Assembly (NCBI RefSeq): GCF_001194135.2
Contig: NC_069004.1
Span: forward strand, 32,118,580-32,182,122
Direction of reading: 5' to 3'
DNA from: Octopus bimaculoides
Taxonomy: Eukaryota
DNA length: 63,543 nt
Each line of letters starts with the position of its first letter. The first letter of the stretch is position 1. This document shows positions 10,417 to 46,639 of this stretch, piece by piece. The position numbers and the translations under genes were made by a program. A model generated the notes under the pieces. That model searched no databases. It was not told the DNA's origin and worked only from the letters and a program-made list of their open reading frames with translations.

Positions 10417-10489
10417 CTGATTCTGTGAGCAAAGTCTATCAGCTGGCTCTTGTTACCTTGGTAACAGGCACCATGCTAGATAATGTGAT

Positions 10490-10520
<31 letters not shown>

Positions 10521-10620
10521 GGAGTGGGGAATAGACTGCAGGGAGGTAGAAGGGCGGGGAGGGGACAGGAGATACCCCAAACAAGAATTACAGTCAGCTG
10601 CTAACAGCTGATTGGTCAAA
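10417..10620 (-). promoter_or_regulatory. Candidate internal promoter and short non-coding first exon
   Basis: CTGATTGGTC (NF-Y CCAAT) 10608-10617; CAGCTG E-boxes at 10605, 10595 and 10440; GGGCGGGG 10552-10559; GTTACCTTGGTAAC (RFX X-box) 10452-10465; CAG|GTATTT donor at 10417|10416. Confidence 0.5.
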
Positions 10621-13600
10621 AGTATATATATAGCCAACCACCAACACCACCCCACACACACATACATCATGCAGTCACCACCAGAACTAGCCACCACCAC
10701 CACCATTATCACCACTACTACTACTACTACTACCAGCACCACCTCAACTATTATTATTACAACACCACTTCTACTACTACTACTACTATTACTACTATAC
10801 TACTACTACTACTACTACTACTCTGTTGTACATTAAGCAACACGTTAAGTGGATATTAAGAACCTGCAAAGTTAATTCTGACAGAGCTGATAAAATGTAA
10901 AGAATTAATTAATAAATGCTCGCAGCTACGTGTATATATATATATATAGGTTATATAACGAGATATATAGGTTATATGTAACGATATAGGATATATACAG
11001 GTTTATAGATGAGACATGTCATATCTAGGTGAATGGGTTAAACTAGGTACATCTGGTATATATTACAGATAACTAGGTTATAGAGGAGATATCTCGTAAC
11101 TAGGTACGTATGGTTGAACTAGGTACATGCTTTAAATTAGATACAGGGGATATATTAAGAGATATGACCGTCACTGAGGTACCCAGGTTAAAACAGATAT
11201 ATAGTTTAAAGAACAGTAAATAAGCGGCCCCACACCACACTCACTTTCTCCCTACGCCCATCTCCCTACACAGATGCACCCCCTGTACATATGCACAACA
11301 CCCTGTTTTTTCTTCTCTTCGTACTCCTCCCCATAGAGCTGCATTTCCATCTGGGGCCCTAAACTTTTAGCTTCTCTCCATTACCAATATAGGTGCAGGC
11401 GTGGCCATTTAGGCGGAGGCATGGTTGCGTGGGAAGAAGCTGCCTTCTCAGCAACATGGTTCTGGGTTCAGTCCCACTGTGGGACACCTTGGGAGGAGAG
11501 GGGAAGAGTTCATGTCATTCATGTTCAATCAATAAATCATCTCTCTCTCTCTCTCTCTACACACACGCATGTACCCATACTAGTGGCATATAAAAGGCAC
11601 CCTTCGAATGTGGGGCCTCACAGAGGCAATGATGAGTGACCAAGACTTTTGGCGATACACCTTTCTTGAGAAGACACGTGAAGCTAAAAGAAATCATAGT
11701 TGTGGCCAATGCTGGTATCACGTAACTGGCACCTGTGTGAGTGGTGCATAAAAAGTACCCATTACACTCTTGGAGTGGTTGGCGCCAGGAAGGTTATCCA
11801 ACTGTAGAAACATGCCAAAACATATTGGAACCTAGTTTAGCCCTACAGCTTACTAGTTTCAGTCAAACCGTGTAACCCATGCCAGCATGGAAAACAGATA
11901 CTAAATGATGATGAGGATATATATATATATATATATANNNNNNNNNNNNNNNNNNNNNNNNNNNNNNNNNNNNNNNNNNNNNNNNNNNNNNNNNNNNNNN
12001 NNNNNNNNNNNNNNNNNNNNNNNNNNNNNNNNNNNNNNNNNNNNNNNNNNNNNNNNNNNNNNNNNNNNNNNNNNNNNNNNNNNNNNNNNNNNNNNNNNNN
12101 NNNNNNNNAAGAAACACACAAAAACCGTTAGATTCACTTCAACATTTAAATTTATTTTGCCAAAATATTTTCATCGCTTTGAAACTGCGACCGATTCACT
12201 GTGCAGCACGGAATTTTGTCAGTGAACAGGTCATGGTCTCAAAGCAACAAAAATATTTTGACAAATTAAATTTAAATGATGAAGTAAATCTAATGGATTT
12301 TTTGTGTTTTTAAATGACTTATAAACACCTTCCACGCTGCAATTGTTTTCGTTCCAGCAAATGATCTCAGATCAGGTCACTTGCTATGCAAGTACATCTC
12401 CATAATATATATATGCAAGGACTGTGGATTGACTCTTGACCAATGCCTCCATCTACCAAACTTCACTCATAAGCCATTGGTTAACCGAAAGCTACGATGA
12501 AAAGTGTTACCACCTGACAAATGTGTATGTTCCATGCAGTAACATTGAACACAAAACCATGTGGTTGGCTGAGAGGCAAACTTCTTAACCATACAGCTAT
12601 ACCTATGCAACATGAACATCTATGCTCGAGAAGGGCAAAATAGGGAAATGCAACAATCTAGTCTAGCCCAAAATATAAGTAGGCATAGGATCAAAGACGT
12701 TCCACCTATGACCATCCCATCCTATCCTTTTCTCAAAGTATTGTATGTCAAGGATTACAATTATCCAATGCGTCCCCTCCCTTTGCAAGATGTTAAGAGT
12801 ACCACATAAAGGGGATTTGGCTACAATTTCTAGCAGGCTGGGCGACCACATGCATGCTCCATTAGAAGTACCAACTGCATGTGAAAAACCATGCTGTAGA
12901 GACAGCCATCTTTGGGAAAGACAGAGTTTATTGAGGTGGATTTTCTACAGCTGGAAGCCTTTCCTGTCACCAACCCTTACCTGTTTCCAAACAAGGTAAT
13001 ATTTCCCCAGGGCCAGATATGGCTTTCCATGGAAGACTGGAAATAAATGACACTGCTTGTGTAACAGTGATGTTTATTTACAACAATTATATGTCAAGAC
13101 AAAGATACATACACACAAAGTGAGGGACTTTAGGTGATGGCCAACCAGCATGGAATTCTATAGAAGGAGGGGGAAAATGGCAGGGGGAAGGGCTTTTCAA
13201 AGTGTGGGATCTTGTATGAATAGTTGAAGTAAAACAAGGGCTTGGGTCCCCCAAGGCCTGTTGACCAATGTCCCTGATAATCCAATATACCTCTACCCCT
13301 CATTTATTACAATGTCCACTTTCAAACACTTATGTAGTTAAATGACTAATAAATGTATATATATTCATACCTATGTATATATACATCATCTCTTGCCTAA
13401 TTATACACACACACATATATATGTGCATATACACACACATATACAAGGTGTGTGTGTGTGTGTGTGTAAAACAAGTATACACATTTTCAAAATTATTTAA
13501 ATGCCTGATAATAATTAGAACAAAACATCACCCACACACATATATACACACAGGCACACATAGTGTTTGTATACACACATAATACACACACATACACAAA

Positions 13601-13695
13601 TATAGCAAAACAGTGCTTCTATTAAATGTGCTGTGAGAGTTTGTGTACGTGGTGTGTGTGTGTTTGTATCACAGATACATATATAATAGAGCAAG

Positions 13696-13754
<59 letters not shown>

Positions 13755-14107
13755 CTGGTTAAATTTGATGTAGTTCACAGAGAAAGAAGATGTGAACCGC
13801 AACAAGTGACATGACTCGTCCAACACAGGTAACAGAAAGAACAGCTGTGAAATAATGATGATGATGATGATGATGATGATGATAACTATGGTGATGATGA
13901 TGATGATGATGGTATAGTTTGCAGAACAATTAAGTCAACTTCGTTTTCAGAATTACTTTTGAATTATTTGTTTGGAATATGTAAAAAAAAAAAAAAGTTA
14001 AAAATAGAATATTCTTTAAATAAAAACAAAGAAATGTATGTATATACCCAGACACACACACACAATGTATATTTTTATTTATATCTTAGTTCAATTATAA
14101 CAATGAG

Positions 14108-14169
<62 letters not shown>

Positions 14170-15063
14170 CATACAAACACACACACACATATACACACAT
14201 CATTCCTCGCTTTGTTTCCTCAAAACTCTTTTTTAGCATGCATAGTTCTAAATGACATTTCGCAGGAATACGTTCACGGGAATGTAGATTACGTGATGTA
14301 GAAGTTTGCAACATAAATATATGGAAATAAAAAGTTAACAGTGCTAAAGATAATATGGAAACTGGTTGTAACATAAATGATGGAGCAGGGAGAGAAAGAA
14401 AGAAACGATTCCAAACACCCTTGATAATACTTTTTTACCCTTCTTTTTTTTGTAAATGTTGTCAACATAATCGTAATCTACCCACTTGAAAACGTATATC
14501 TGCAAAATTTCATTAAAAAATATAAGTTTTTCAAAAAGTTATGAGGGAACAAATTGTTGGGGCGCTAAACTATAGTTATGCCTGCAAATTTTATAACTAG
14601 TTATGTTGTTTGCGTGTGTGCGTGAATGGTGTGTGTGACAGTAGGTTGTCTTGGTATAACAAACAAACGAAAACAGTTCCACATTTACCGAGTTCTGTGA
14701 CACAATAATTATATTTAGGTAAGTTTCCAAAGAGCCAAACTTGGCTATCCACCCACGCCAGTCACCAACTACATTAAACCTCCGAAAGGCAGGAGGCAAG
14801 CAAGCAGTCTGTCCGTCTTTCTACCGATTCTGCACATCCAAACAATAATAATAATAATAATAATTCTTTCTACTATAAGCACAAGGCCTGAAATTTAAGG
14901 GGGAGGGGAATAGTCGATTACAGCGATCCCAGTGCGTAACTGGTACTTATTTTATCGACCCCGAAAAGATGAAAAGCAAAGTTGACCTCGGCAGAATAAC
15001 AATAAGAACAAGAAATGATAATGAGAAAATTAATGACAATAATAATAATAATAATAATAACAA

Positions 15064-15433
15064 CAAGAGCACTCAGAGAGCGCAAACCTCCGCCAAGGCA
15101 ACACCAATGTCCTCTCAACGATTAGCCGGAGATGATTTTTAAAATGAGAATATCTAAAATAAACTCGACTGCTCTCACAAACGAAGGAGACTAAGAATGA
15201 ACCTGACCGCTCTCAAAAATTAAGTAAAAAAGAAAAAAAAACAGGAAAAATAATCCAGAATCCTTGTCCGGTACCGGATCGATCCCAAAATCTAATCAGT
15301 TCGTGCCAGTCATGTGGCCAAACATCCCTGAAAGTTTCATCCGAATCCATCCAATGGTTCTTGGGATATCTTGTCCACGGACAAACAAACAAACACGGCT
15401 GAAAACAATACCTCCGCTTTCTCTAAGACGGAG
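15064..15433 (-). mobile_element. Helentron-associated (HINE/DINE-1-like) non-autonomous element
   Basis: Subterminal ACCTCCGC inverted repeats, short (GTTT)n and a 3' hairpin GCGCTCTCTGAGTGC. Matches 9704-9960 in the opposite orientation. Confidence 0.65.
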
Positions 15434-16039
15434 TAATAATAATTCTATTACAAGCTGAAGGTCTGAAATTTAGTGGGTGGGGACTAGCTGATTACCAACG
15501 ATCCCAGTTCTCGGCAGATCCTTTTTTTATCGATTCCGATAGGATGAAAGCAAAGTCGACCACGGTGGAATTTGAACTGCATACAACAACAACAACAATA
15601 ATCCTTTCTATTATAGGCACAATTTGGCGGGGTGGGGGCTAATCGATCACACCGACCCAGTGCGGAATTGGAACTTATTTCATCGCACCCCGGTAGGATG
15701 AAAAGCAAAGTCGATCTCGGGGGGAATCTCAACACGGAACGTAAAGACGGACGAGACGCCGCTAAGCATTTTATCCGGCGTTCTAACGATTCTGCCAGCT
15801 CGAATAATAATGATAATAATAATTCCTTTCATTGGCCGGAAGGGCCCAAGATATTGAGGACTACATCAAAAGACAAAATGCAACACACAACGGTTGGGGG
15901 ATGCCGTTGGGGTTGGCATCGACCAAAGAGAGATTCAACAATAAGGGTATAACAATAGAATTCGGGAAACTAAAAAGAATCCCCAACAGCGATGCAGTCC
16001 ACCTCAGGTGATAATAATAATAATAATAATAAAAACAAC

Positions 16040-16071
<32 letters not shown>

Positions 16072-16226
16072 TGATGATGATATTTGCCACAAGGGCATCA
16101 GATGAGAGGGATAATACAAAGACAGTTTACAATATATGAGGGGGAGAAGTTACATAAAAGATGAGAGGAAGAAATGGAAAGGGACGGGGGGAGAGAAATG
16201 AGATAAAAATATATGTAGTATACAGA

Positions 16227-16390
16227 CTAGCGTAGCTCGGGTGTGTGCCGCCCGCGGTGGCCCTTCCGTTTTCCACCATCCACCCCCGGACCCCACAAAA
16301 AACATTGCTTACAGCGATAGCCTACAACAAGATGAAAAATGCCGCCTGGGGGCGGACCGTCCCTACCGCGCCCACCTCTAGCTACTCTAG
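16227..16390. mobile_element. GC-rich MITE; related truncated copy at about 58042-58160
   Basis: Imperfect TIRs CTAGCGTAGCT and AGCTACTCTAG; internal AAAAAACATTGC.TACAGC shared with the 58-kb copy. Confidence 0.5.
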
Positions 16391-16684
16391 TGAGTATACA
16401 AAAATAAGGGAACACATTCTGTGATGCAGTCTTCCTGATAGAGCAAAACCTCCAAGGAACCCCACAGATCGTGGTTTCGAATTCTGGCACAAGGCCAGTA
16501 ACTTCAGGGAAACAGGTAAGTCGATTTGATCGACCCTAGAGCTTAACTGGTATTTATTTTATCGACTCCAGCAGAATTTGAACTCAGAACGTAAAGACGG
16601 GCGAAATGCCGCTAAGCATTTCGCCCGGCGCGGTTACGATTCTGTAAGATCGCCATCTTAAGAATCATAAATATTAAAAGTTAA

Positions 16685-18190
16685 AATTCCTCGCCCGAAT
16701 ACATTTTTGTAGGATCCTGTTGTTGTTTTTGAAAGGGGGACATTCGTAATACTTGCCGGGATTTGAACTCGGGATGTAATACGGACAACAATAAATGTAT
16801 AAAACAGTGAAATGAAAGCAGTGTTCCTGCATGGGCGCAGTGCAATAGCTGGAACCAGTTAAAGAAATGAATCTTTAAAAAATGTTAAAATATTGATCTG
16901 GAAAGCAGTACTCCTGTATGGGCTGAAACGATCACAAGAATTTCGTTGTCCAAACGAACACAATTTTAAAACTTCAAATTCCTCGCCAAAAACAAAAGCG
17001 AAATAAAAAAAAAAAAACAGATTCAAAACAATTCGGTATCTGCTGCTTTGAACGAGGGGCATTAATAATTCTTGATCGGATTCGAACATGGATCGCAAAA
17101 ACTATATTAAATATATAAAACAGTGAACTGAAAGTAGTTTTCCAGCGTGACTGAAGCAGTGTCGTAGCCTGGTCTGAAACTGGTCAAAAAAGTGGAAGAA
17201 TTCCTAAGGATTCCCTCACCNNNNNNNNNNNNNNNNNNNNNNNNNNNNNNNNNNNNNNNNNNNNNNNNNNNNNNNNNNNNNNNNNNNNNNNNNNNNNNNN
17301 NNNNNNNNNNNNNNNNNNNNNNNNNNNNNNNNNNNNNNNNNNNNNNNNNNNNNNNNNNNNNNNNNNNNNNNNNNNNNNNNNNNNNNNNNNNNNNNNNNNN
17401 NNNNNNNNNNNNNNNNNNNNNNNNNNNNNNNNNNNNNNNNNNNNNNNNNNNNNNNNNNNNNNNNNNNNNNNNNNNNNNNNNNNNNNNNNNNNNNNNNNNN
17501 NNNNNNNNNNNNNNNNNNNNNNNNNNNNNNNNNNNNNNNNNNNNNNNNNNNNNNNNNNNNNNNNNNNNNNNNNNNNNNNNNNNNNNNNNNNNNNNNNNNN
17601 NNNNNNNNNNNNNNNNNNNNNNNNNNNNNNNNNNNNNNNNNNNNNNNNNNNNNNNNNNNNNNNNNNNNNNNNNNNNNNNNNNNNNNNNNNNNNNNNNNNN
17701 NNNNNNNNNNNNNNNNNNNNNNNNNNNNNNNNNNNNNNNNNNNNNNNNNNNNNNNNNNNNNNNNNNNNNNNNNNNNNNNNNNNNNNNNNNNNNNNNNNNN
17801 NNNNNNNNNNNNNNNNNNNNNNNNNNNNNNNNNNNNNNNNNNNNNNNNNNNNNNNNNNNNNNNNNNNNNNNNNNNNNNNNNNNNNNNNNNNNNNNNNNNN
17901 NNNNNNNNNNNNNNNNNNNNNNNNNNNNNNNNNNNNNNNNNNNNNNNNNNNNNNNNNNNNNNNNNNNNNNNNNNNNNNNNNNNNNNNNNNNNNNNNNNNN
18001 NNNNNNNNNNNNNNNNNNNNNNNNNNNNNNNNNNNNNNNNNNNNNNNNNNNNNNNNNNNNNNNNNNNNNNNNNNNNNNNNNNNNNNNNNNNNNNNNNNNN
18101 NNNNNNNNNNNGATTTCGAAAACAATTCTTCTACCTGTTGTTTTGGCAGGATTCGAACAGGGGGTAAATAACGCCAGAATAAAATAATCG
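16685..18190. repeat. Degenerate tandem array of units of about 300 bp running through the 17221-18110 gap
   Basis: AATTCCTCGCC at 16685 and 16977; GGATT(T/C)GAAC at 16759, 17078 and 18149; TATAAAACAGTGAA at 16798 and 17114. Confidence 0.55.
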
Positions 18191-18285
18191 ACAAAATCAA
18201 TCAAAAAGTACAAGAATTCCCAAGAATTTCCAAGTCCAAAACGCCAAAACACACACACACACAAAAGAGCGATTTCGATACGTAC

Positions 18286-18543
18286 CTGAGAGGCACTGGT
18301 ATTCTTTTGGTGACTTTCGCATGCGAAAGTTGATTTGGAAGGAAAGGGAGGCGGCGTGCACCAGCCGTAGTGTATGGCACCACAGGTAAGCTGGAGCCGT
18401 TTGAGTTCGGGTACATCGCAGACGGGGCAATAGTGGACGGAGCGCTGCCAATGGATGTCAAGTTTACTGCTGTAGTACAAAGTCAACCGGGAATAGAGAA
18501 CTTGGGCAGAAGCAACTTTGGTCACCACATGCCTCTGCTGCAT
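18286..18543 (-). CDS. Candidate alternative first coding exon (86 codons, MQQRHVVTKV...KNTSASQ)
   Basis: Non-repetitive, roughly 50% GC, CpG-rich. ATG has A at -3 and the segment ends at CAG|GTACGT in phase 0. Weak recalled similarity to the PR130 N-terminus. The reading frame is ambiguous because the other two minus frames and one plus frame are also open over part of it. Confidence 0.4.
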
Positions 18544-19260
18544 ACTACCACGACGACGACTACCACAAGAGCAGCTACTACTGCTTCTGCTACTACCACT
18601 ACTACTACTACAACAACAACTACTACTACTATTTCTACAATGCCACTGCCAAAGACTTCGACAACGCAGCCCTTCTTTTTTTGGCAGATGGCAAGAACTT
18701 TTCAGCACAGGCCGAAGAAACGGCAGCGGCGGCGTCAGAGGAAGAAGCAACAGCAGCAGCAGTAATCGTAGTAGTAGTAGTAGTAATCGTAGTAGTAATA
18801 AATGGTATTAATCGCGATGGTGGTGGTGGTGGTGTTGGTACCGAAAGGTGGAGGAGAGGATAACTCATCACACAATAGTTAAATAGCCAGATGCCAAGAG
18901 CAACAGAGAAAATAAAATGAAAATAAATGAATAAATAAAGAAATAGTTTGGCGAAGTAATTCCCTGATTCTTTCAGACCAAACTCCAAAAACTTGATGTA
19001 AACCCGACAACTTTGAAACAAATTATCCAAAGTTTGCTTCTGTTTTTCTTTTCCTTTTTCCGTTCGTTTTTGTTTTGGTTTTCGTTCTTCCTGAGCTAAG
19101 GGACCGAAAAAACTTATTTACTAGTATCAACTGCTGTTTGGAGTGGTGTTACGACGATTATTTGCAGTTTTCTACTACTGTTATTGCAGCGGCGGCGGCG
19201 GCGGTTGCCCTCCCCCCATGCGTAGATGTATAAAAAGATCCGAGTTTATATATATTGAAG
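18544..19260 (-). promoter_or_regulatory. CpG-enriched, triplet-repeat-rich probable 5' UTR or promoter of the 18.3-kb exon
   Basis: GCG, CAG, TAG and GGT triplet runs and many CpGs against a CpG-poor background, directly upstream (minus sense) of the 18543 ATG. Confidence 0.35.
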
Positions 19261-19719
19261 ATAGAAATGTGATTGAGGTAGAAATAATTTAAAACGAGGA
19301 GGAAAAAAAACACGTAAAGCTGTATATAAATATATATATCCGTGTGTATATGTGTGTGTGTATATATATATATATATATTAGCCGCTAGTTTAAGGCGAG
19401 AGAAAGAGAGAGAGAGAGAAACACGTGTTCCTCCTCTTCTCAAAAGTTTGGTCTCCTGAACATACGAGAAAAAGATGGTGTTGGTGTAGTTGTTGATGGT
19501 GGTGATGATGATGATGATGATAGGAGTTATGTGGAGGGAGGAGGCGGTATGTGAGTACCAGTAGACTGATAGAGAGTGGGAGGAGAGAGAGAGAGAGAGC
19601 CAATGGTGTGGGTTTTAGCAGGCAACACTAACTACCAAATATCCTTGATGATAAAATAAACAGAACCAAAAACGAAACGAATGCCAGAACACACACACAC
19701 ACATTTATATATATATATA

Positions 19720-19765
<46 letters not shown>

Positions 19766-19965
19766 ATAAATACACACACAAACACAGACATTATATAAAC
19801 ATACATGTGTCTGTGTATACATATATACATACGTGTGCGCGTCTGTATGTATATATATGTATATGTGTGTGTGTATATATATATATATAAATGTGTGTGT
19901 ATCTATACACACACATACGTGCGTGTGTATGTGTGTATTTGTGTGTGTGCATACGCATTTATTAC

Positions 19966-20007
<42 letters not shown>

Positions 20008-20049
20008 CAATTGCTTATATTAGACTCAAAGAATTAATTTTCCTCTCAC

Positions 20050-20500
20050 ACTAATTAAGAAGTTTTATTGCTGCTGCTGTTGTTGTTGTTGTCAGGGGTG
20101 ATGGTGGTGTGGTGTTGGTTGATAGGTCTTGCTGCTGTTCGCAGTGGTGGCCACGACGCCATTGGCGGCGGCGGCGACGACGCTGTTGGGTAACGACAGT
20201 ATTGTTGGCGTTCGTGCTGTGCCACCCCCCTCCCGCCACCTCCCGCGGCAGCGGTGGTGGTGGTGGTGGCAGTGTTGTTATTGTTGTTGTTATTGTAATG
20301 ATGCTTGGCATTAATAAGACTTATTGTTAATGGTGTTTGTTGTTAGTGATGTCACAGTGGTGGTCATGGTGGGGTTATAGCACTGATGCTGTTGTTCAGC
20401 CTTTGGCTTCAAACTAATTGAGCCGATTGACCTCCTGACTGACCTCCCTCCCGTCATCAAAGACAATCCAACGGCGACCAAACCAACTTTTGGTCCATAT
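20050..20500. promoter_or_regulatory. GC/CpG-rich non-SINE island with a transcription-factor motif cluster
   Basis: (GGC)n and (GGT)n runs; TAATTG 20415-20420; TGACCT-N6-TGACCT 20428-20445; ATCAAAG 20456-20462. Confidence 0.3.
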
Positions 20501-23069: not shown

Positions 23070-23965
23070 TAGGGGCTGCTAAAAAGTTCATGGCTTTAAG
23101 GGTGTCATGAAAGGCCTGGTTGGAGGACCAACCTTCTGGAAACTGTAGTGGAAGCGGATACATCTCAAACTATGCATGAGTTAGCAGCAAGGTAAAGAAG
23201 CTGGACAAGTGGGTACTACATGAACTGAACGAGCATCAAATGACATATCTTGAAACCTGCTGGTCTTTGCTGTCACGGCATAAAAGCAAACCATTTTTGC
23301 ATCATATTGTTACATGTGATTGGATTCTTCTCAACAATAGCAAGCATTCTGCACGGTGGTTGGATAGAGATGAAGTGCCAAAACACAATCCAAAAAAGAA
23401 TATTCACCAAAATAAGCTAATGGTGTCTGTTTGGTGGTCCAGCACTGGGGTCATCCACTACAGCTTCATGAGACCTGGTCAGTCAATTACAGCGGATGTA
23501 TATACATCAACCAGTTGGATGAAATGATGATTGAACTTGCAATTAAATAACTGAGACTGGTCAATAGAGACAGGCCAATTCTCTTGCAAGGCAATGCTTG
23601 ACCACATGTCGCACAAAGAACGCTACTCAAGTTCCACAAACTGAACTTAGAAGTACTCTGTCATCCACCATATTCACCAGACCTTGCACCAACTGACTAT
23701 CATGTTTCCCAGGCATTAGACAACTTTTTTGCAACGAAAAAATCTTCAAATCTGAAGAAGATGCAAAAACAGTCTTTCATGATTTCATCACCTCTTGCTC
23801 TCTGGAATTCTTCGCTGCTGGAATAAATAAGCTACTGATAAAATGACAAAATTGTGTTGATAATTTAGGTGCACACTTAGATCAGCTGCACTGCTTTTTG
23901 TTGAGATAAAGTAAAATAAACTTTCAGTTCAAAATCAGACATTTCATTCTTAATGACTTGATTAT
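23070..23965 (+). mobile_element. Degenerate mariner transposon (SETMAR/Hsmar-like transposase pseudogene)
   Basis: Frames give KLDKWVLHELNEHQ, FLHHIVTCDWIL, KLMVSVWWS and HPPYSPDLAPTDYH (the mariner YSPDLAPxD motif), interrupted by stops and frameshifts. TIR-like 3' end near 23935-23962. Confidence 0.9.
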
Positions 23966-29465: not shown

Positions 29466-29868
29466 GGAGCAGGCATGGCTGTGTGGTAAGAAGATTGCTT
29501 TCTAACCACATGGTTCCGGGTTCAATCCCACTGTGTAGCACCTTGGGCAAGTGTCTTCTACTATAGCCTCAGGCCAACCAAAGCCTTGTGAGAGTTTAGG
29601 AGATGGAAACTGAAAGAAGCCCATCACACGCACATATATATGTGTGTGTTTTTCTGGCTGTTTGTTCCCCACCATCACCACTTGACAACCAGCGTTGGTG
29701 TGTTTATGTCCCTGTAACTTAGCAGTTGCGGCAAAAAGAGATCTATAGAAAAAGTACCAGGCTTTAAAAAGAAAATGTGGGGTCAAATTGTTCGACTGAA
29801 ACCTTTCAAAGCGGTGCTCCAGCATGGCCGCAGTCAACTGACTGAAAGCAAGTGAAAGAATGAAAGAA
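29466..29868 (+). mobile_element. tRNA-derived CORE-like SINE (family A)
   Basis: Head GGCATGGCTGTGTGGTAAG...GGTTCAATCCC, CORE-like CCTTGGGCAAGT, conserved 3' part. Other plus copies or fragments at about 5665-5885, 11393-11480, 22118-22300, 33183-33505 and 60090-60470. Confidence 0.85.
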
Positions 29869-30540: not shown

Positions 30541-31729
30541 ATATATATTTTTATTATGTGAAGGTGCATGGCATAGTGGTTAGGTTGTTGCACTCACAAT
30601 CGCTAGTTTGTGGGTTTGATTCCATGACTGGGCAACACTTCATTTCACGTTGCTCCAGTCCCCCCCCCTTCGATCAGGGAGGAATGTTGGCCTGCTTGCC
30701 TAGCCAGTGGAAGAAGGGGCGTCATTTGGAGGCTGAAACAATGCAAAAAGCGCATTGTGACCAGCGATGTGTAATACCGTCTGATAGTCCGGTCGGTCAC
30801 GTGACGTGATCACGTGATATATATTATATTATATTAGTTTCAAATTTTGGCACAGGGTCTGCAATTTCGTGGAGAGGCCAAGTCGATTACATCGACTCCA
30901 GTGCGCAAGTAATACTTATTTTACCGACCCCCGAAAGGATAAAAAGCAAAATCGACCCCCGCTGCTATTTGAACTCATAATGTAAAGTCGGAAGAAACGC
31001 CGCTCAGCATTTTCCCTGGCGCGGTAACGCTTCTGCCAGCTCGCCACTACTACATTATTTTTCGGTAGTTCTGTTTTCAGGGGAGACTACTCAGAGCGTA
31101 CAAACTGCTTACACACACACACTGATTGCTCCATCTTCACAGATCGTTGGCATCTGGTGCTTCCCCATTGTCGATAACTTTCTTACTTTCCATTTTATGA
31201 CCTTTCGAATGACTATTCAGCCTGACCGCAGATCCTTATGGTTTGAAGCACAGAGGTGACACACGAACGCTGTAGCTTCCAACTGGTTAGGTCTGTACCA
31301 GTCGCCACTCTTCCATTGCCACTGGACTTCCAGTGAATGGAATGACAAGTGAGGTCACCTCAAACAGACGTCTGTACGTCACTGGACTAGAGTGATAAAC
31401 GCTTCTACAACACAAGTACCATTCTCTAAAGCAGTGCTTCTCAACCTGTTTACCCTTGCGTAACCCTTAAAATATATTACGCCTCAAGGAACCCCTACAC
31501 AAAAAAAAAATTATATACCATATCTTTCTCATATTTTTTTTCATCGTAGTTCACGCAGTAAATATCACACACACACACATATCATATATATGTTTTGCTG
31601 AACTGCTACGTTACGGGGACGTAAACACACCAGTATCGGCTGTCGAGCGATGTATGTATGTATATCCTGTCCTCGTCTGTTGTTATTATTTGTATATTCT
31701 CCCATATATATATATATATNNNNNNNNNN

Positions 31730-32889: not shown

Positions 32890-33829
32890 GATATATATAT
32901 ATATAGTTTTCTTAATAATTAAACAAATTACACAACAGAAAATTCGTTGCTAATTCCTCATCAGTCAACGTCCAAAAGATTCTTACAATTTCTTGACAGC
33001 TTCTTTCAGTTTCCAAGAAATGAATCCACTCACAAGACTTTTGGTCAGTCCAGGACAACAGTAGAAATCACTTGCTCAAGGTGCCATACAGTGGGACTGA
33101 ACCCAGAACCATGTGGCTGAGAAGCAAGGTTCTCAACCACACAGCCATACCTGTGCAATATATATATATATATATATATATAGGTGCAGGACCAACTGTA
33201 TGGTTCTGGGTTCAGTCCCACTGCATGACACCTTGAGGCAAGTGTCTTCTATTTTAGCCTAGGACCAACCAAAGCCTTGTGATTGGATTTGTAGACGGAA
33301 ACTGAAAGAAGCCCGTCGTGTATATGTATGTATGTACGAATGTATTTGTGTCTGTTTGTCCCCACCAACATCACTTGACAACCGATGTTGGTGTGTTTAC
33401 ATCCCCATAACTTAGTGGTTCGGCAAAATAATCTGATAGAATAAGTACTAAGCTTATAAAGAATAAGTCTTGTCCATAGTCAAATGACTGAAAGTAGTAA
33501 AAACAATACACACACACACATGCATACTCAGGTGCTAATATGTCTGTGTGGGTCAGGAATTTGCCACAAGATGCCTAACCCCTGGTCTTCCTTCAACTAA
33601 AGCAAGGGTTCTCAACCAGTTTTTACCTATGGACCCCTTTGATTACTATTTTATTCTGGTGGACTCCCATAACCATTTGATGTTTAAAAACTAGTTTTAT
33701 AGAAACTTCTTTCAAAAAAATTCCCATTTCGTTTTGCACACATTAACTCAAGTGGGTTGAACTATGGAAAACGACAGAGAAAGAACCCTCACAGTTGTTT
33801 CTTGCTATACACTCTAATACATACATCCA

Positions 33830-35802: not shown

Positions 35803-35832
35803 TTGGTGGCTAAAGAAGCAACAACTTCTCAT
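35803..35832 (-). CDS. Candidate alternative first coding segment MRSCCFFSHQ
   Basis: ATG with A at -3, in-frame stop shortly upstream (35844-35842), 10 codons, then CAA|GTGAGT donor in phase 0. A possible acceptor (long pyrimidine tract, CCCCAG|C) at 36317|36316 would give a 514-nt exon. Confidence 0.3.
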
Positions 35833-36447
35833 TCTACGCCATTATTAGCAGAGCGAAGCTGCTAGCTGTAATCACTGGGTAGCAGGATCAAACCCAGCTG
35901 ATTGCACGCCATCATCCTGTAGCACGAACAATTTCAGCCTGTTCCGCACAGACAGACAAACTTAAGTGTTCTTCTGTCTTTCTGTCGTTTATTTTTTTTT
36001 TTTCTTCTTCTTTCAGCCTGTCTTTTTTTTTTACGTTTGCTATTGTTTGTTGTTGTTGTTGCTGTTGCTGTTGGCGATGCTGGTGGTGGTGTAATTTGTA
36101 ACTTGGCTCCTACAATAACAATAACGACGACAACAACAACAACAACAACAGCAACAATAACAGCAGCAGAACAACAGGAATGAAGTAGAAAGTTCCAGCT
36201 AGCAACCGCTAAAACAATTGTACTTTCTACAGCTGATACCCGGGGTAGCTGGGTTGTCGAGTGGGTAGGTTCAGGGTATGCCAGGTCAGGTCATGTCAGA
36301 TCAGATGAGAGCAGGGCTGGGGTGATGGAGGAAAGGTGGAGAGAAGAGAGGGAAGGAACGGGTAGACTTGTTTCTTTTTATTACTTTTTTTTTTACTTAT
36401 TTTTTGTTCATTTCATTCTGTTTCATATTTTGGATACACACACACAC

Positions 36448-36595: not shown

Positions 36596-38234
36596 TGTAC
36601 AAAGGAAATATAATGAAGAGATACACAACCACATGCACACATTCATTAAAGAGAGAGATCTGTATCATAAGCACAGAAATATGAGCAAGTGTGTTTAGAG
36701 CTTGTGTGTATATGTGCATGTGTATATATGTGCATGTGTGTAGAAAATGAAAGAGAGAGAGAGAGATACATTCATTCACACACATCTCATTCATCACACA
36801 CACACACACACACTCTTCATTCTCTCAACACATTTCACATACATATATATACACACACATACACACGCACATAGACACACATACACATACATATATCTCT
36901 TTCTTACCTCTCATGCAAACACATATATACACCACACACACACACCATTTTCTCATCACTTACATAACTCATTCCTCATCACACACACACACACACACAC
37001 ATTCTTTCATGACACACTCACACGCACACACATACTGTCGTTTTCTCATCACCTCCACTCCTTATCACATACACATTCTCTCTCTCTGTCTCACAGACAC
37101 ACACACACACACACACACACGTCACATATAAACAGACAGACACGTTCGCATCACATGCAGAGGAAAGAAGAAAAAAATTATACATTGCAAATAATGAAAA
37201 ATAACAAAAAAAAAAGAAAGAAATACAACAAATAAACCAAAAAAAAAAATACACATAAAAACAGAACAAAACCATGAAAGAAAAACAAAAAAGAATATGA
37301 ACAAAAACTATGAAACAAAACAGTTTAGCAGCAACATCAGGTAGAATAGGGGGGTAGGGGTAGGTACCACTAAAATGACTTAGCTTACCTGGCAGAGCAA
37401 TCAGTGGGCAACAGGTAGGAAAACGATAGCTAGCTTCACCCTCTCAAGATAGTTGCCTTAAAGTACAAATAGCAGCTAAATCTCCCTCAAATCACATGAT
37501 CAGAGTCTTAAGAAAATAATAACAATGGTAATTTTCTTTTCTACTATAGGCACAAGGCCTGGAATTTTGAGGGGAGGGGACTAGTCAATTACATTGACGC
37601 CCCCCCCCCCCAGTACTCGACTGGTAATTAGTTTATCAACCCCTGAAAGGATGAAAGACAAAGCCAACCCCAGCGGAATTTGAACTCAGAATGTAGGGAC
37701 GAAATACTGCTAAGCATTTCGCCCAGTGTGCTAACATTCAGAATGTAAAGACAGAAGAAATGCTGCTAAGCAATTTGTCCAACACAGTAATGGTTCTGCC
37801 AGTTTTGCCACCACAGATTTGCTTGACCTTAACCAGTTGAGCATGTCCCTTGGTCGCTGACAATATGTGCATCTCTGATCATAAGCAGATGTAGTGGGGG
37901 AGCATCATAGCCATGTGTTGAGAGGAATTCTTTGGCGTTTGGATAATTCATTTCTGGAAACATGGGTGTTTCGTTCAACATCCCTAAACAAACCTTATTC
38001 AGGGACCTTTTGAGTGGAATGGACTACTCGACTTGAAGAAGAAAATTCTAACTGGGCCCCCACCTGCAAGGTCATGCACTGTTTATCTTGATATGAGATC
38101 ACCATGTCACACGCATATGGTTGTGATGCATGGGCCTGGTGTACCCTTATCAGAGAGGTAGTCATGATGGGTATACTGGACTTCATATATTTTACCCCGG
38201 TGTCAATTTGATGGCATACACTGCTCTCTCACTC

Positions 38235-38271
<37 letters not shown>

Positions 38272-39538: not shown

Positions 39539-39569
<31 letters not shown>

Positions 39570-39964
39570 TTATATGGATAGATAGAAAGATAGATAGATA
39601 GATAGATAGGCTTCTTTCAGTTTCCATCAACCAAATCCATTCACAAAGGTTTAGTTGGCCCAAGGCTATAGAAGAAACTTTACCAAGGTGCCGCACAGTG
39701 GGACTGAACCCAGAACCAGGTGGTTGGGAAGCTAACTTCTTACCTCACAGTCATACACCTGTGTGTGTGTGTGTGCGTGCGTGCATGTGTTGATTTATGT
39801 CAAACCAAGCGGTGAGTAGTGCTCAATACATGTAGAGGATATGATTTTTATCAAAATTGAAAGTTTATGTTGTGGATGTGAAGCTAGAATCTATGGGTGA
39901 GTGTGTGTGTGTGCGTGCGTGCATGTATGTATTGGGGGTGTATGTGAGTATATGTGTGTATACG

Positions 39965-39999
<35 letters not shown>

Positions 40000-40175
40000 A
40001 GACAAAGCTGCTGTTTTGTGTATGTGTGAGTGTTAGAACAATACATCCAAGTACATAGTGGGGGGGGGGGAGAAAGAAAGAAAGGAAGAATGTCTGATGA
40101 TGGAACGGTTTTGTTGGTGAGAAATCTAGGTTGGCTGATGTCCAGAGATTAGAATACCATCGAATGAGATGACAG

Positions 40176-40214
<39 letters not shown>

Positions 40215-40845
40215 GAAGAGAGAGAACAGGCCTAGTACTGGAGAATATAAATGTAATTCTATCAGTTAGCAATTGCCTCAAACAGACAGACACAGCTGTA
40301 TGGCGAGTGAAGACTATTGTAGATAGATAGAGAGAGAGAGAGAGGGAGATAGATGTAGATATATAGATGGGTTGAGGAAGAAAGAGAGAGAGAGATTGTT
40401 GATAAGTAGGTTGGGAGGTTGGTTTAGAAATAGACAACCGGGTGGGTGGATGGATAGAAGAGATAAATAGGTGGAAGGATAGATAAACAGACAAGATAGA
40501 TAAATGGATGGATGGATGGGAGAGTGGAAGTGTTCGGGTGGGACTGGGGGCATAGATTAGTGGGTGGACAGACAGATAGATAGATAGACAGACAGACAGA
40601 TACATGCATGCATGCATACATACATATATAGACGGAAAGATAGATAGATGGATGGCTGGCTATAGACAGACAGACAGATAGATAGATATAAAGATAGACA
40701 GACAGATAGATAGATAGACAGATAGATAGATAGACAGATATAAAGACAGACAAATATAAAGACAGACAGACAAACAATTGGGTGAAGGAGATACACTATG
40801 AACCATGGGTCAGCAACTTCATTTAGTAATGACTTTCTCTTGATA

Positions 40846-40885
<40 letters not shown>

Positions 40886-42874
40886 CCAAAAGTAAGTCTG
40901 AAGCTATTTTGTCCTATCAGAGCTGAGTAGATTTCGTAGACGGAAACTGAAAGAAGCCCATCATATACGTGCACCCACATGATTCTGGGTTCAGTCCCAC
41001 TGCATGGCACCTTGGGCAAAAGTCTTTTATTATCACCTCGGGCAGACCAAAGTCTTGCGAGTGGATTTGGTAGACGGAAACTGAAAGAAGCCCGTCATAT
41101 ATATATATATATGTGTGTGTGTGCCTCTGTGCTTGACAACTGATGTTCGTGTGTTTACATCCCCGTAACTTAGCGGTTTGAACCCGGAACCATGTGGCTA
41201 GTAAGCAAGCTACTTACCACACAGCCACAACTGCGCCTATTTCAAAACATTTTTGCGGAAGTAACATTATGAAAATAGTTTAATTGATAAATAAACTCGA
41301 CGAAGACAAAAAAATCGATATATATGAATTCGACGTGATGAACGTCTAGAATTACAAACAGAACAGAAGAAAATGTTACATAAGACTACTGATACGCCGT
41401 CGTCTACTTCAGATCCCTGCGATGAGGAAAACATAGGTCGCACTCTTGAATTTTTATCGAAATTTTTGGGTAAAAAAAAAAACGAGTATATATATATACG
41501 GTACACCGATATCACAGCCGACATCATTTAAAAATAGATATGAAGATAAAAAATGTTGTACAACTGTGAGATATACATAAAAAAGCATTTCATTCTGTCC
41601 CCACCAGCACCCTACCCAAGGCACGAACTCTAATCCTGGTTTGTTGATAGGAGGAAATTCGAACAGAAACCATGCAAAGGGAGACAAATTCTGTTTTAGT
41701 TATAAAATTTACCTCCCTTGAAATATCTTCTCATTCCATTAAATCTTTAAATATCTTCTCATTCCATTAAATCTTTAAATTTAAGACAGGCTGTTTGACT
41801 TCCTCAGTCCCAGATTATCGTTAATCTAAGTCAGACTTGTGATCAAGTTGTTCCAAATTTAACCATCCTATCTCTTTAGAGGGATCTAGGATTACAGGAG
41901 CCTTTTTTTGTTTTTACTCTGCATTTCAAAAATGAAACAAAATAGTCATAACTACAGTTTGGTGCCCCAAACGTTGTTTCGTTAAAAAAATTCTTAAAAA
42001 TACATTAAAAATACGTATTTTTAAATAAAATTTCACCGACATACTATATATATAAGAAAGTAAGTAAATGGAGATGTAACATTTAATAAAAAATTTGTTA
42101 TCAGCAAAAATCAAATATGTTCCCTTACAGCCATTTCAATTAGGCCTAACAAATTACATAGTAATTAATAAAATCATTATATTAGGCAAAATCTCTTCAA
42201 AGGGGTAGAAAAAAGATATACCGTTAGGTTTTTAAGTGTTGTATTTTTGAATCATCACAGCAGACTCATGTATATATATATATATTCAGATCTGCTTCAC
42301 AAAAATAAAAGAGAGATAGACAGAAAAAGGAAAATGTCCTACCTATTTGAAGACTATGGAAGTATTTTTTTAAAAATATTTCATTTAATTTTTCCACAAT
42401 TTAATTGTTTTCCTTGCTTTATTCTAAGTTGAAAAAGTCGAAAAGACTGAAACCGGTACTAAAAGGTTCTTCATGATAAAATCTTTACAGCATTTTCTAC
42501 CTTGTCTTATTTTCCTTATATACATATATATATATGTATATATATNNNNNNNNNNNNNNNNNNNNNNNNNNNNNNNNNNNNNNNNNNNNNNNNNNNNNNN
42601 NNNNNNNNNNNNNNNNNNNNNNNNNNNNNNNNNNNNNNNNNNNNNNNNNNNNNNNNNNNNNNNNNNNNNNNNNNNNNNNNNNNNNNNNNNNNNNNNNNNN
42701 NNNNNNNNNNNNNNNNNNNNNNNNNNNNNNNNNNNNNNNNNNNNNNNNNNNNNNNNNNNNNNNNNNNNNNNNNNNNNNNNNNNNNNNNNNNNNNNNNNNN
42801 NNNNNNNNNNNNNNNNNNNNNNNNNNNNNNNNNNNNNNNNNNNNNNNNNNNNNNNNNNNNNNNNNNNNNNNNNN

Positions 42875-43066
42875 AGGTATACAGTTATGTAAAAAGAAAA
42901 CACGTACAATACCCATTTATTTTTATCAAAAAAATTAAAAGTTAGCCTGATTTTCAATATTTTCAGTGCCATTAAACATGATAATACTTTTATCATAACT
43001 TTTAATTTTTTTTGTTAAAAATAAATGAGTATTGTACGTGTTTTCTTTTTACATAACTGTATACCT
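42875..43066. repeat. AT-rich foldback or MITE with arms of about 70 bp
   Basis: AGGTATACAGTTATGTAAAAAGAAAACACGTACAATAC and GTATTGTACGTGTTTTCTTTTTACATAACTGTATACCT. Confidence 0.75.
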
Positions 43067-43606
43067 ACTTTTGCACACACACACATTCCTGTATATACAC
43101 ATACACGAGGGTGGGCTTCTCAGATTCACACACTTATTGCAGTGGTCCTTCAGTTTTTCTAAGCCCTCTGAAAGAACTCGGACAGTTGGACCTCCAACCA
43201 AGCCTTTCACAGTACCCTCAAAGCCAGGAACTTTTCAGTGCCCCCCACCAACTTCATATGTCCTGACATGTCCATCGTCTTTTTCTTTCTTTTAAGATGA
43301 TGATGATGTATGATTCTGAGAGAGATTTGGCTGCTGTTTCCAGCAGATTGAATGATCACATAGAGATTCAGTCACTGCTTTCAGAAGTTAACGCAGTAAC
43401 AAGTTTAAAAAACAACTGATCCATACACAGCAGTCATACTGATAACAGGTGCAGCTGAGATAAGACAAGATAGAGCTGCCGTGATATCTTGCGCTGAGTT
43501 CTAGCATTTCTGGGGTTTTTATCTGGAAGTTTATAAATAAAATTTTTAAAGTTGGTACTCCAGTATAGCCAGAGCTAAGATTGATAAAACAAACTTTATA
43601 TTTATA

Positions 43607-43663
<57 letters not shown>

Positions 43664-44440
43664 GTATTTCTCATTTATTTATGACTGGTTTACACTACTG
43701 AAGTATTGAAAACAATTTTAATATCGTAAACCAGGAAATCTTGAGATAGTGTCCATAATATTTTATAAATCCTTTCTGTCCATTTTCCTCGCATACAACC
43801 TTGTGGTAATGGAGTGATAACTTAAGTGGTTTATAGACCATTTGGGGTCTACTTCTAGCATACAGGCATTGTAGGTTCAGCACTCTTATTATAATTATTT
43901 TGTAATTATACTTAAACATAAATTAACCATTATGGCATTGTTAGTACACTGGCCACTGATAAATCATTAAATAATGACTTCATCCTATTTATATATATAT
44001 ATATATATGCATATGTACATATGTATATGTACATACTTTCATCTATACGTATATATATATATATGCATATGTGGGCACAGGATGTCATGAAACGTGTACA
44101 ACAAAAAAGTATGAAGCACAAGTACATGGAACATGAACTGTTCTTTCGACCAACGAAAGACACAAATGGAAAACAAAGCAAACAACATAAAGAACGACCC
44201 TTCATCAGTCCCTCCCCTCCTGTTCCCGTCTTCTCTCAACAATGTGTTGAGAAGGATAATTGCAAATGCTGTGAAAGTTAAGCAGCTCTTGATATACATA
44301 TTTGATTCATGTAATTTTATTTTTTAATTATTTAATTAATTATGTTGGAAAAAGGCTGAGAAAGATTGTCTGCGTTATTAATCAATGTAATATGAGAACA
44401 CAAAGGCAGCAGATTTTGGCAAATAAAGGGTGCTATTTTA

Positions 44441-44483
<43 letters not shown>

Positions 44484-44719
44484 NNNNNNNNNNNNNNNNN
44501 NNNNNNNNNNNNNNNNNNNNNNNNNNNNNNNNNNNNNNNNNNNNNNNNNNNNNNNNNNNNNNNNNNNNNNNNNNNNNNNNNNNNNNNNNNNNNNNNNNNN
44601 NNNNNNNNNNNNNNNNNNNNNNNNNNNNNNNNNNNNNNNNNNNNNNNNNNNNNNNNNNNNNNNNNNNNNNNNNNNNNNNNNNNNNNNNNNNNNNNNNNNN
44701 NNNNNNNNNNNNNNNNNNN

Positions 44720-44775
<56 letters not shown>

Positions 44776-45229
44776 ATTCACATACATTTACATGCATACA
44801 TACACACACAAAGATACATACATACAGATATATATACATGCACACTTCATTTGTAGATTAACAAGGCAACTCATATATGTATGTATGTATGTATGTATAT
44901 CACAACAAACGTCTCTCATTTCTCTATTGTTTTTAATGACTAGTATCATTTACTATAGTAGCATTATATATATACACTTACATAGGCATAACAGCACTTT
45001 AAACACACCCTTCCAAACACTGCTTGTCACAACTGACTAGTTTGTAGAATCCAGTTGAGTTGTGAAGAAAATTTGGAAGTTCGCTATATACAATAAGTCT
45101 TTGTGTCTAACTGGAAACTTATGACATGCTTTGTGACATGCTCATGACATGCTTTGTGTCTAACTCAGAAACTTATGACATGCTCCACATTGCTTATGGA
45201 TCAACTTGTATGAGACGACCATCAGCTTT

Positions 45230-45765
45230 TTTACTAGCACAAGAGATTCAAGAATGGTAAAGAGGAGGTGAGAGATGACGAGATGTGTGAAAGGGAGAGG
45301 GAGATCAAAACATCAGAGCCGGTTGAGAAGATACACAATTTTCTGGATGAAGACCATTGTGAGTCTACAAAGACAACACGCATGCTTTTGGAGTTGGTGT
45401 GGCAATCATATGCAGTATTATTGAAGAAGATCTGTACAGGCGCATAATTTGTGCAAAGTTTCTTACCAGTTAGAAACAGAAGGAAAGACACTTTGGTGAC
45501 AGCAGAGAGATGGTTGGGCTCATTATATTCAACCCAAGAGTATTTGAGTCTCTGGTGACCTGTGATAAAAGTTGGCTTTACTGTGATGAGCCAGATTGAC
45601 CAATGGAAGCAGCCTGGTTGCCCAAGACCCAAGAAGACCAGCCAAAACAAGCCGATGATCTCTTTTACAACAGCAAGGCCATCATCTATATCCACTGGGT
45701 TCCCTCTGGCCAGACAGGCAACACAGAGTATTTTGTGGAGGTTTTCAGGAATGCAAGACACCTTT
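45230..45765 (+). mobile_element. Degenerate mariner transposase fragment
   Basis: RFKNGKEEVRDDE..., ICAKF, SLVTCDKSWLYC, QWKQPGCPRPKK and IIYIHWVPSGQTGNTEYFVEVFR, broken by frameshifts. Confidence 0.8.
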
Positions 45766-46266
45766 TCTGCTCCTTGATACAACTCCCTTCCTTCAGTTCA
45801 GGGGTCTTGTCCTGCAAGTTACTTGGTAACTTCACTGGTGCTGGTTCCATATAAGAAGCACCCAATACAGTCTCTAAAGTGGTTGGCATTAGGAAGGACA
45901 TGTAAAAGCCATGCCACAGCAGACAACAGAGCTTGGTGTTCTCTTCTTCTTACTTTCCTGTCCTTCTCAAATTGTTCAACCCATGCTAGCATGGAAAAGA
46001 GACATTAAATGAGAAAGAGAGAGAGAGAAAGACAAACAGATAGATAGATGCACAGGCTTCTGCAGATTCCCCCCAATCAAATTCCACTCTCGCAAGTTAT
46101 TTATGGGTCAAGCAGAGGCTACAGCAGACAAAACTTGCCCAAGGTGCCATGCAGTGAGATGGAACCCAAAACCTCATGTTTACAAAGAGCCAACTTTGTG
46201 ACCACGCAGCCGCACCCTGCCCAAACACCCATACCCTCACCCACGTGGAAGATGCATACGACTTAC

Positions 46267-46572
46267 CTGAACATGAGTAGATGTGGTCGATGTACTGACA
46301 GATTTACTTAGATATGTCCGGCGTGGACTCCTTGGACTGGACACCTTTCCGATGACGGGAGCACATGGCGGTGATCCTGGACAGATTCGTGGGGTCGTTC
46401 GGATACCTCTTGGAGAACTCTCAACACCGAGCACTGGCAACAGCTGAGGGATTATGTCCCCTTTGGCAATCTGCAAGAGGTTCTGACGAAGTAACTGTTG
46501 TGTGTCAGGCTCTGACAACCAATGGAGGAAGAGTTCGTCCACTTTGTTGCGTAACACTGGTTTCAGTGCCAT
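46267..46572 (-). CDS. PPP2R3B: First coding exon (102 codons) of a serine/threonine-protein phosphatase 2A regulatory subunit B'' (PR70/PR72 family)
   Basis: Translates as MALKPVLRNKVDELFLHWLSEPDTQQLL...SSPRSPRR...STHVQ, matching the recalled N-terminus of human PR70 (LQPVLKMKVDELFLYWLSEASTQRML). It ends at a CAG|GTAAGT donor in phase 0 (46267|46266). An upstream acceptor TTCTTTTTTTCTTTGCAG|G puts the exon start at 46639. The single invertebrate gene probably corresponds to both PPP2R3A and PPP2R3B. Confidence 0.9.
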
Positions 46573-46639
46573 CACACCATTATATATTCCACTAAGAATA
46601 ATCTACCGATTTTGAAACATTCTTGGGGGGCAAAAAAAC
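46573..46639 (-). other. 5' UTR part of the PPP2R3 exon, containing a 2-codon uORF
   Basis: Strong acceptor at 46640|46639. ATG GTG TGA at 46580-46572 overlaps the main ATG (TGATG). Confidence 0.65.

Follow-up and report, generated by a model that had tools for sequence, protein, structure and literature searches.

PR130 and PR72, B'' regulatory subunits of protein phosphatase 2A (PP2A), are N-terminal splice variants of one gene (PMC2529318). In the mouse PPP2R3A gene, exon 1 (2434 bp) is specific to PR130 and exon 3 to PR72 (PMC2529318, Table 1 and text), and two N-terminal splice variants have been described for PPP2R3B (PMC2529318, Discussion). The stretch analysed here, to which we refer as the window, comprises 63,543 nucleotides (nt) of Octopus bimaculoides; the features discussed lie on its minus strand, the gene is transcribed from right to left, and downstream means lower coordinates. 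We consider it probable (about 0.85) that the 5' part of the only octopus orthologue of PPP2R3A/PPP2R3B lies in the window, with three mutually exclusive 5' coding exons that each end in phase 0 and would be joined to one common exon. N-terminal splice variants are a known route of diversification of B'' genes, and the N-terminal extension is the part that differs between vertebrate PR130, PR72 and PR70; an array of this type is unsurprising in kind.

As in vertebrate PPP2R3A, one octopus B'' gene would produce N-terminal variants on a common EF-hand body by means of different 5' exons. However, the Cys/His-rich exon of the octopus encodes 86 amino acids (aa), whereas the PR130-specific region of vertebrates has ~660 aa, and no PR72-type N-terminus was seen in octopus. 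With vertebrate PPP2R3B, the octopus exon at 46572-46267 shares the PR70-type start LKPVLxxKVDELFLxWLSE (a provisional human PR70 sequence was used). Vertebrates have the PR70-type and the PR130-type N-terminus on separate paralogues; in octopus they appear as alternative exons of one gene. In O. sinensis and O. vulgaris, the B'' isoforms present these three N-termini too (identical or 96-100% identical), attached to the common exon, and the locus CHS0354_032776 of the bivalve Potamilus streckersoni has the PR70-type and Cys/His-type pair, as in octopus. The clustered protocadherins and UGT1A also have several 5' exons in a row, each joined to one shared exon; in comparison with them, the octopus has only three exons, mutually unrelated in sequence, at least one of which is preceded by an acceptor and so would not be a first exon, and neither a promoter for each exon nor a stochastic choice among the exons is in evidence.

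Results

Isoforms of related species and the common exon

A preliminary description of the window had proposed that several 5' exons, located in non-repetitive islands, feed one B'' gene through one common acceptor to the left of the window. The decisive result was a protein search with the concatenated open reading frames (ORFs) of three of these islands, which had two matches: a 3.5-kb transcript contig from a different cephalopod and O. vulgaris CAI9740312.1, annotated as 'PP2A regulatory subunit B'' subunit beta-like isoform X3'. The clusters of both matches hold isoforms of O. sinensis and O. vulgaris in which three N-termini stand on an identical sequence that begins with IPKEKE. These are MALKPVL...STHVQ-IPKEKE... 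(XP_029650440.1 and XP_036368569.1 of O. sinensis, CAI9740310.1 of O. vulgaris), MRSCCFFSHQ-IPKEKE... (XP_036368572.1 of O. sinensis, CAI9740311.1 of O. vulgaris) and MQQRH...NTNASQ-IPKEKE... (XP_036368571.1 of O. sinensis), the last of which also occurs with a short insert, MQQRH...NTNAS-LPKQQ(Q)-IPKEKE, in XP_029650441.1 and XP_036368570.1 of O. sinensis and in CAI9740312.1 of O. vulgaris. The three-exon array is already present in the public annotation of these sister species.

When the isoforms were compared with the window by tblastn, three genuine matches were obtained (46572-46267, 35832-35803 and 18543-18286), and the common part from IPKEKE onward found nothing in the window. The same search, with matches to the three 5' exons only, agrees with the earlier observation that no B'' core exon lies between the islands. 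In addition, the six-frame translation of the window contains none of the motifs FYFP, LYWK and EYWFR, and a Pfam scan of its 150 longest non-simple ORFs returned mariner transposase only and no B'' core. In the parts that are not in the window itself, the sister-species isoforms carry the Pfam families P2R3B_EF-hand, EF-hand_13 and EF-hand_7; SIPQFYFP, which contains the IPxFYFP contact with the A subunit, is present in XP_029650440.1 and not in the window, and the isoform core matches the PR70 structure 4I5L (1e-168). The exons ending at 35803 and 18286 stand above chance because they are identical or nearly identical to annotated isoform N-termini, and not because of the strength of their donors.

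Evidence at the mRNA level comes from other cephalopods. Two mRNA contigs from different sequencing runs, L009 (MALKPVL type) and L014 (MQQ type), were taken as one species, their shared part being 99.5% identical. The identity starts at the junction, and the leaders upstream of it, 404 and 641 nt long, are unrelated. For the MQQ-type mRNA L015, from a second species, there is a genomic contig (L003) that runs colinear with it from 181 nt before the ATG as far as the exon end AAG|GTAGGT. Furthermore, the Potamilus locus has one isoform for each N-terminus, PR70-type and Cys/His-type, on a common body, and this pair appears to be old, at least mollusc-wide. The gene spans 134 kb in Potamilus and 208 kb in O. 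sinensis, the latter fitting 5' exons that lie tens of kb apart. The proposal of one B'' gene with several 5' exons and one common acceptor left of the window has therefore gained protein-level support in O. sinensis and O. vulgaris, and the joining to the same downstream exon has mRNA-level support in another cephalopod for two of the three N-termini. In cephalopods outside Octopus, counterparts were found for the PR70-type and Cys/His exons; among the clusters examined, the Cys-Cys exon was seen in Octopus only.

In O. bimaculoides, the available models split the gene into a 111-aa protein (P0001), which is the PR70-type exon read into its own intron, and two core-only proteins of 394 and 405 aa (P0043, P0050). 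A 51-kb locus of this species (L024; CM046624.1, 32,038,167-32,089,124) carries the core exons from residue 310 onward and lies wholly outside the window. An exact search with the 111-aa ORF of the window found no matching contig, and a literature search returned no paper linking PPP2R3 to octopus.

The PR70-type exon

Donors were scored with a simple weight matrix over the 4274 GT sites of the minus strand, and acceptors with a crude one over its 2887 AG sites; same-strand decoy counts refer to sites within 1-46266 and opposite-strand counts to the plus strand. The donor strings of the preliminary description are present on the minus strand, with CAG|GTAAGT at 46267, CAA|GTGAGT at 35803, CAG|GTACGT at 18286 and CAG|GTATTT at 10417. 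Its phases and peptides for the first three were also right when the ORFs were translated, and these several same-strand 5' exons all have donors of one phase, phase 0. As for the non-repetitive character of the islands, all four do fall in sequence without a second copy in the window, a property that 68 stretches of at least 150 nt possess; in-window repeats make up 37% of the bases and simple sequence 26%.

The PR70-type 5' coding exon (46639-46267, 373 nt) lies between an acceptor AG at 46641-46640 and the donor CAG|GTAAGT after 46267. The acceptor, CCTCATTCTTTTTTTCTTTGCAG|G at 46640|46639, ranks first among the 2887 AG sites, and the donor first among the 4274 GT sites. At the acceptor the minus strand reads TTTTTTTCTTTGCAG|GTTTTT..., followed by the ATG (46572-46570), 102 codons (46572-46267, phase 0; MALKPVLRNKVDELFLHWLSEPDTQ...THVQ, that is, MALKPVL...THVQ) and CAG|GTAAGT. 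O. sinensis XP_029650440.1 and O. vulgaris CAI9740310.1 begin with the same peptide (100% aa identity), and both continue with IPKEKE. A search with the peptide found short exon-sized mollusc ORFs only, two of them named B'' subunit beta; the mollusc homologues share MALKPVLKxKVDELFLRWLSEPDTQ...LPSPRSPRRPL, and the N-terminal PR70-type motif LKxKVDELFLxWLSE is present in 46572-46267. A provisional human PR70 sequence matches this exon alone in the window (73% over 22 aa). A Logan contig of a related octopus (L001) aligns over 46682-45588, with 94.5% nt and 100% aa identity in the coding part, 91% in the leader and 78-82% in the intron, and the acceptor 46640|46639 is conserved in it.

Because the best acceptor of the window stands directly before it, this exon, although the first coding one, is probably exon 2 and would follow a non-coding exon further right. 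The earlier reading of it as an alternative first exon is thus retained as regards a real 5' coding exon and modified as regards its position, which is probably internal. Upstream of it there are two CpG-rich blocks, 60351-61150 (observed/expected ratio, o/e, 1.03) and 63151-63500 (o/e 1.22), the first of which contains a donor-like AGG|GTGAGA at 60524. Both blocks are candidates for the promoter and non-coding first exon that would feed the acceptor 46640|46639.

The Cys-Cys exon

The short Cys-Cys 5' exon (coding part 35832-35803, minus strand) encodes the 10 aa MRSCCFFSHQ and ends with CAA|GTGAGT after 35803 in phase 0 (score 5.2, rank 18 of 4274). O. sinensis XP_036368572.1 (624 aa) and O. 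vulgaris CAI9740311.1 (625 aa) both open with exactly these 10 residues and go on with IPKEKE, and MRSCC occurs once in the six-frame translation of the window. Just 5' of its start, at 35833-35925 on the same strand, there are two upstream ORFs, ATGATGGCG...TAG (also written ATGATGGCGTGCAAT...TAG, 17 codons) and ATGGCGTAG; since these precede the start, efficient use of the MRSCCFFSHQ ATG is doubtful.

The Cys/His exon and its possible relation to PR130

The Cys/His-rich, PR130-type 5' coding exon (coding part 18543-18286, minus strand) encodes 86 aa, MQQRH...SASQ, and ends with CAG|GTACGT after 18286 in phase 0 (score 5.9, rank 10 of 4274). The product is identical to O. sinensis XP_036368571.1 in 83 of 86 positions. 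In two other cephalopods, the N-terminus encoded by full-length B'' mRNAs (P0041, P0051) is 65-70% identical to it, as is a genomic exon (P0056/L003). An exhaustive HMMER search with the 86 residues recovered 42 relatives, among them full-length B'' proteins (Sinanodonta, Potamilus), a partial B'' model (Patella) and fragments (Bulinus, Elysia); the module is N-terminal in the full-length proteins and in the partial Patella model, which includes the start of the core. Eight residues are invariant in all 14 aligned sequences (Y23, H37, C39, C42, C54, H58, G60 and C62), which gives the pattern Y...H-x-C-x2-C-x(9-12)-C-x3-H-x-G-x-C at the extreme N-terminus of the B'' protein. The pattern, also written H-x-C-x2-C...C-x3-H-x3-C, is mollusc-wide and suggests metal binding. 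A Pfam scan assigned no family to the module, a profile search of the PDB found no relative, and an AlphaFold2 model from the 14 sequences had a predicted local distance difference test (pLDDT) score of 55.

The module profile was aligned by hhalign with residues 3-56 of a provisional human PR130 sequence, with a probability of 92% (E 5e-7); over 53 columns all six Cys/His positions were matched, and the reversed PR130 used as a control gave 0.2%. If this match holds, the Cys/His exon would correspond to the extreme N-terminus of human PR130, over ~55 residues of that sequence. A literature search found no paper with the PR130 N-terminal peptide. In Patella caerulea (L025, 10001-10810), the Cys/His module opens one long coding exon of 810 nt (270 aa), which recalls the very large PR130-specific exon of vertebrates (PMC2529318, Table 1). 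No PR70-type exon was found at this Patella locus, either in the 10 kb before the Cys/His exon or in the first intron.

The preliminary description gave the Cys/His island a single donor and missed a second one at 18135. A coding piece at 18149-18135 (minus strand), CTG CCA AAA CAA CAG, encodes LPKQQ, found once in the six-frame translation of the window, and is followed by the weak donor CAG|GTAGAA (GT at 18134-18133), 24 nt before the gap 17221-18111. In L003, the uninterrupted Cys/His exon ends with CCA AGA AAG|GTAGGT at the position equivalent to the end of LPKQQ, and because of this equivalence we take the end at 18135 as the ancestral end of the exon. Between ...NTSAS and LPKQQ there are ~139 nt (18288-18150, minus strand) without counterpart in the L003 exon, and the donor 18286 lies inside them; the segment looks like an insertion or an intronisation within a coding exon. 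Its excision restores the frame, and its ends are not GT-AG, GC-AG or AT-AC. No AG is present between 18285 and 18137, and read-through from 18286 toward LPKQQ lands in phase 1. The mismatch with the sister species may stem from a difference between species, from an error of assembly next to the gap or from an unusual mode of splicing.

The candidate at 10417

A non-coding exon had also been proposed to end at 10417, with a fourth, truncated N-terminus as its product. The candidate (10535-10417, minus strand) has no ORF and ends with CAG|GTATTT within a (TAAAA)n tract; this donor scores 1.6, ranks ~159 of 4274, and is equalled or surpassed by 123 sites on its own strand and by 173 on the opposite one. 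An acceptor-like site at 10536|10535 lies in a CT-rich tract, the CpG o/e of the island is 0.06, and neither the isoforms nor the 5' leaders of mRNAs from other cephalopods match it. With a chance-level donor and without ORF, CpG enrichment or match, 10417 was rejected as a fourth exon and is best read as a chance site or, less probably, as a non-coding exon. Where four or more N-termini had been expected from one gene, three were found.

CpG content and putative promoters

The CpG o/e of the whole window is 0.48. It reaches 0.84-1.01 in the Cys/His exon and the 2 kb above it, and is 0.26 and 0.37 in the DNA above the PR70-type and Cys-Cys exons, respectively. The CpG-rich segment at 18544-20450 (minus strand) is the putative 5' leader and promoter of the Cys/His exon. 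In other cephalopods the leader of the Cys/His isoform is 587-641 nt long, is unshared with the other isoform and, over at least the last 181 nt before the ATG, runs colinear with the genome. The 5' leaders of squid-like mRNAs are too diverged to be aligned with the window, save for one 20-nt colinear match at 18949-18930 (E 0.12). These data are suggestive of an internal CpG-rich promoter for the Cys/His exon, and of no promoter at 10417. Of the separate promoters proposed for each exon, only that of the exon ending at 18286 is accompanied by CpG-rich DNA.

CpG-rich segments (o/e 1.0-1.5) were also observed at 15451-16850, 1.5-3 kb downstream of the Cys/His exon. A part of them carries the motif 'DPxxMKxKVDLGG' seen elsewhere in the window, and the segments may represent a young repeat copy instead of regulatory DNA.

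Gaps and repeats of the window

The window contains 14 runs of N, nine of which (~3.5 kb of N) fall within 10417-46639. All the confirmed exons are free of gaps: 46639-46267 is flanked by the gaps 44484-44719 and 50750-50799, 35832-35803 by 31720-31729 and 42546-42874, and 18543-18135 ends short of the 891-nt gap 17221-18111 mentioned above. Mariner-type transposase remnants are present in the long intron at 23180-23823 and about 45300-45900, both on the plus strand. Of the former, 23180-23524 matches the Pfam family Transposase_1 (1.9e-22); in the latter, the ORFs at 45559-45851 look by eye like a decayed transposase C-terminus, and the alignment with L001 extends over this transposase-like region (45588-45900). 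A short interspersed repeat with the translation '...CPRCHAVGLNPEPCG...' occurs in both orientations at many sites (for example 2895-3019, 29505-29600, 33048-33117, 40920-41000 and 49300-49409). Triplet repeats beside the islands were considered as a common architecture and rejected, ~20 period-3 arrays being spread across the window.

Discussion

In the proposed gene model, the PR70-type exon (46639-46267), the Cys-Cys exon (ending at 35803) and the Cys/His exon (18543-18286, with the optional LPKQQ piece 18149-18135) would each be spliced to the exon that begins with IPKEKE, to the left of the window. The products would share the Ser/Thr-rich linker, the IPQFYFP contact with the A subunit and the EF-hand core, and would differ in the N-terminal extension only. 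From its congeners, the same splicing is assumed in O. bimaculoides. Transcripts with the PR70-type exon would begin at a non-coding exon further right and have it as their exon 2, the Cys/His exon would have its own CpG-rich promoter, and the N-termini may direct the phosphatase to different partners.

Several observations weigh against this model. Most of the octopus isoforms are computational models, the XP_ entries of O. sinensis being predictions. The exons for residues 103-309, including the common exon, were found neither in L024 nor in the window, and continuity across the nine gaps between the candidate exons has to be assumed. Furthermore, the NAS-LPKQQ junction of the sister species could not be made here with canonical splice sites. 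Finally, the Cys-Cys isoform rests on a 10-codon ORF placed behind two upstream ORFs, and its start was seen, among the clusters examined, in Octopus only.

The last of these points leads to another reading of 35803, namely a real alternative 5' exon that serves as a non-coding leader, MRSCCFFSHQ being the longest-ORF choice of the annotators and translation starting elsewhere. The shortness of the ORF, the two upstream ORFs within ~90 nt before the ATG, the lack of homologues beyond Octopus among the clusters examined and the CpG-poor upstream DNA are all in its favour, but three Octopus species have exactly this peptide, it is in frame with the body, and two separate genome annotations include it; at 30 nt the sequence is too short for a test of constraint. 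We regard a non-coding leader as possible, at somewhat less than even odds. A single promoter, with one non-coding exon right of 46640 and the three coding exons as alternative second exons, is unlikely. It agrees with the PR70-type acceptor, the best of 2887 and conserved in L001, with the CpG-poor DNA above that exon (o/e 0.26), and with acceptor-like sites upstream of the other two exons (19456|19455 and 36317|36316). It is at odds, however, with the two isoform mRNAs of another cephalopod, whose leaders of 404 and 641 nt have no sequence in common, with the genome-colinear MQQ leader of at least 181 nt above the ATG, and with the position of the MQQ exon inside a CpG-rich block of ~2 kb.

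We give very little weight to the idea that all the islands except the PR70-like exon are chance donor-like sites with short ORFs in a long intron filled with repeats. Nine and sixteen equal or better donors exist on the same strand for 18286 and 35803, respectively, together with 17 and 24 on the opposite strand, and decoy donors with phase-0 ATG ORFs are found at 38064, 2973 and 8025. Nevertheless, the identity to annotated isoform N-termini excludes chance for 35803 and 18286, as does, for 18286, the conservation from bivalves to cephalopods; for 10417 only, with its 123 equal or better sites and no supporting feature, chance is the leading explanation. Equally improbable is a scaffolding artefact, in which exons of different origin would have been joined by misjoins at N gaps instead of forming one locus. 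The interval has nine gaps, and the Cys/His exon abuts the 891-nt one, where the adjacent sequence gives the LPKQQ junction that cannot be spliced; but the same three N-termini are found on one gene in two sister-species assemblies, on contigs of 31 and 48 Mb, and all the exons lie on one strand. One gene with three alternative 5' coding exons is the explanation that we prefer.

In addition to what the public annotation of the sister species contains, the present analysis contributes the acceptor of the PR70-type exon, the LPKQQ segment with its second donor, the rejection of 10417 and the link of the Cys/His exon with a mollusc-wide PR130-like module. The fragmentary O. bimaculoides models of 111, 394 and 405 aa can be understood as parts of one gene with at least three 5' coding exons, which covers ~200 kb in O. 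sinensis. The idea that vertebrates spread this N-terminal diversity over paralogues fits the octopus exons, one being of PR70 type (PPP2R3B) and another of PR130 type (PPP2R3A), both by comparison with provisional human sequences. If the PR130 match holds, the octopus gene would unite PPP2R3B-type and PPP2R3A-type N-termini.

A broader reading, to which we assign even odds, is that the ancestral bilaterian B'' gene had PR70-type and PR130-type alternative 5' coding exons, that molluscs from bivalves to octopus keep both, and that the vertebrate duplications partitioned them to PPP2R3B and PPP2R3A. The PR130-type piece would then be a compact, undescribed zinc-binding module and the only part of the PR130 N-terminal region conserved across phyla, whereas the Cys-Cys start of the octopus would be lineage-specific and could act as a dual-palmitoylation membrane signal. 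One invertebrate gene with both PR70-type and PR130-type N-termini would imply that the two targeting modules predate the vertebrate paralogues, and the ~55 Cys/His-rich residues at the start of PR130 become a candidate functional domain.

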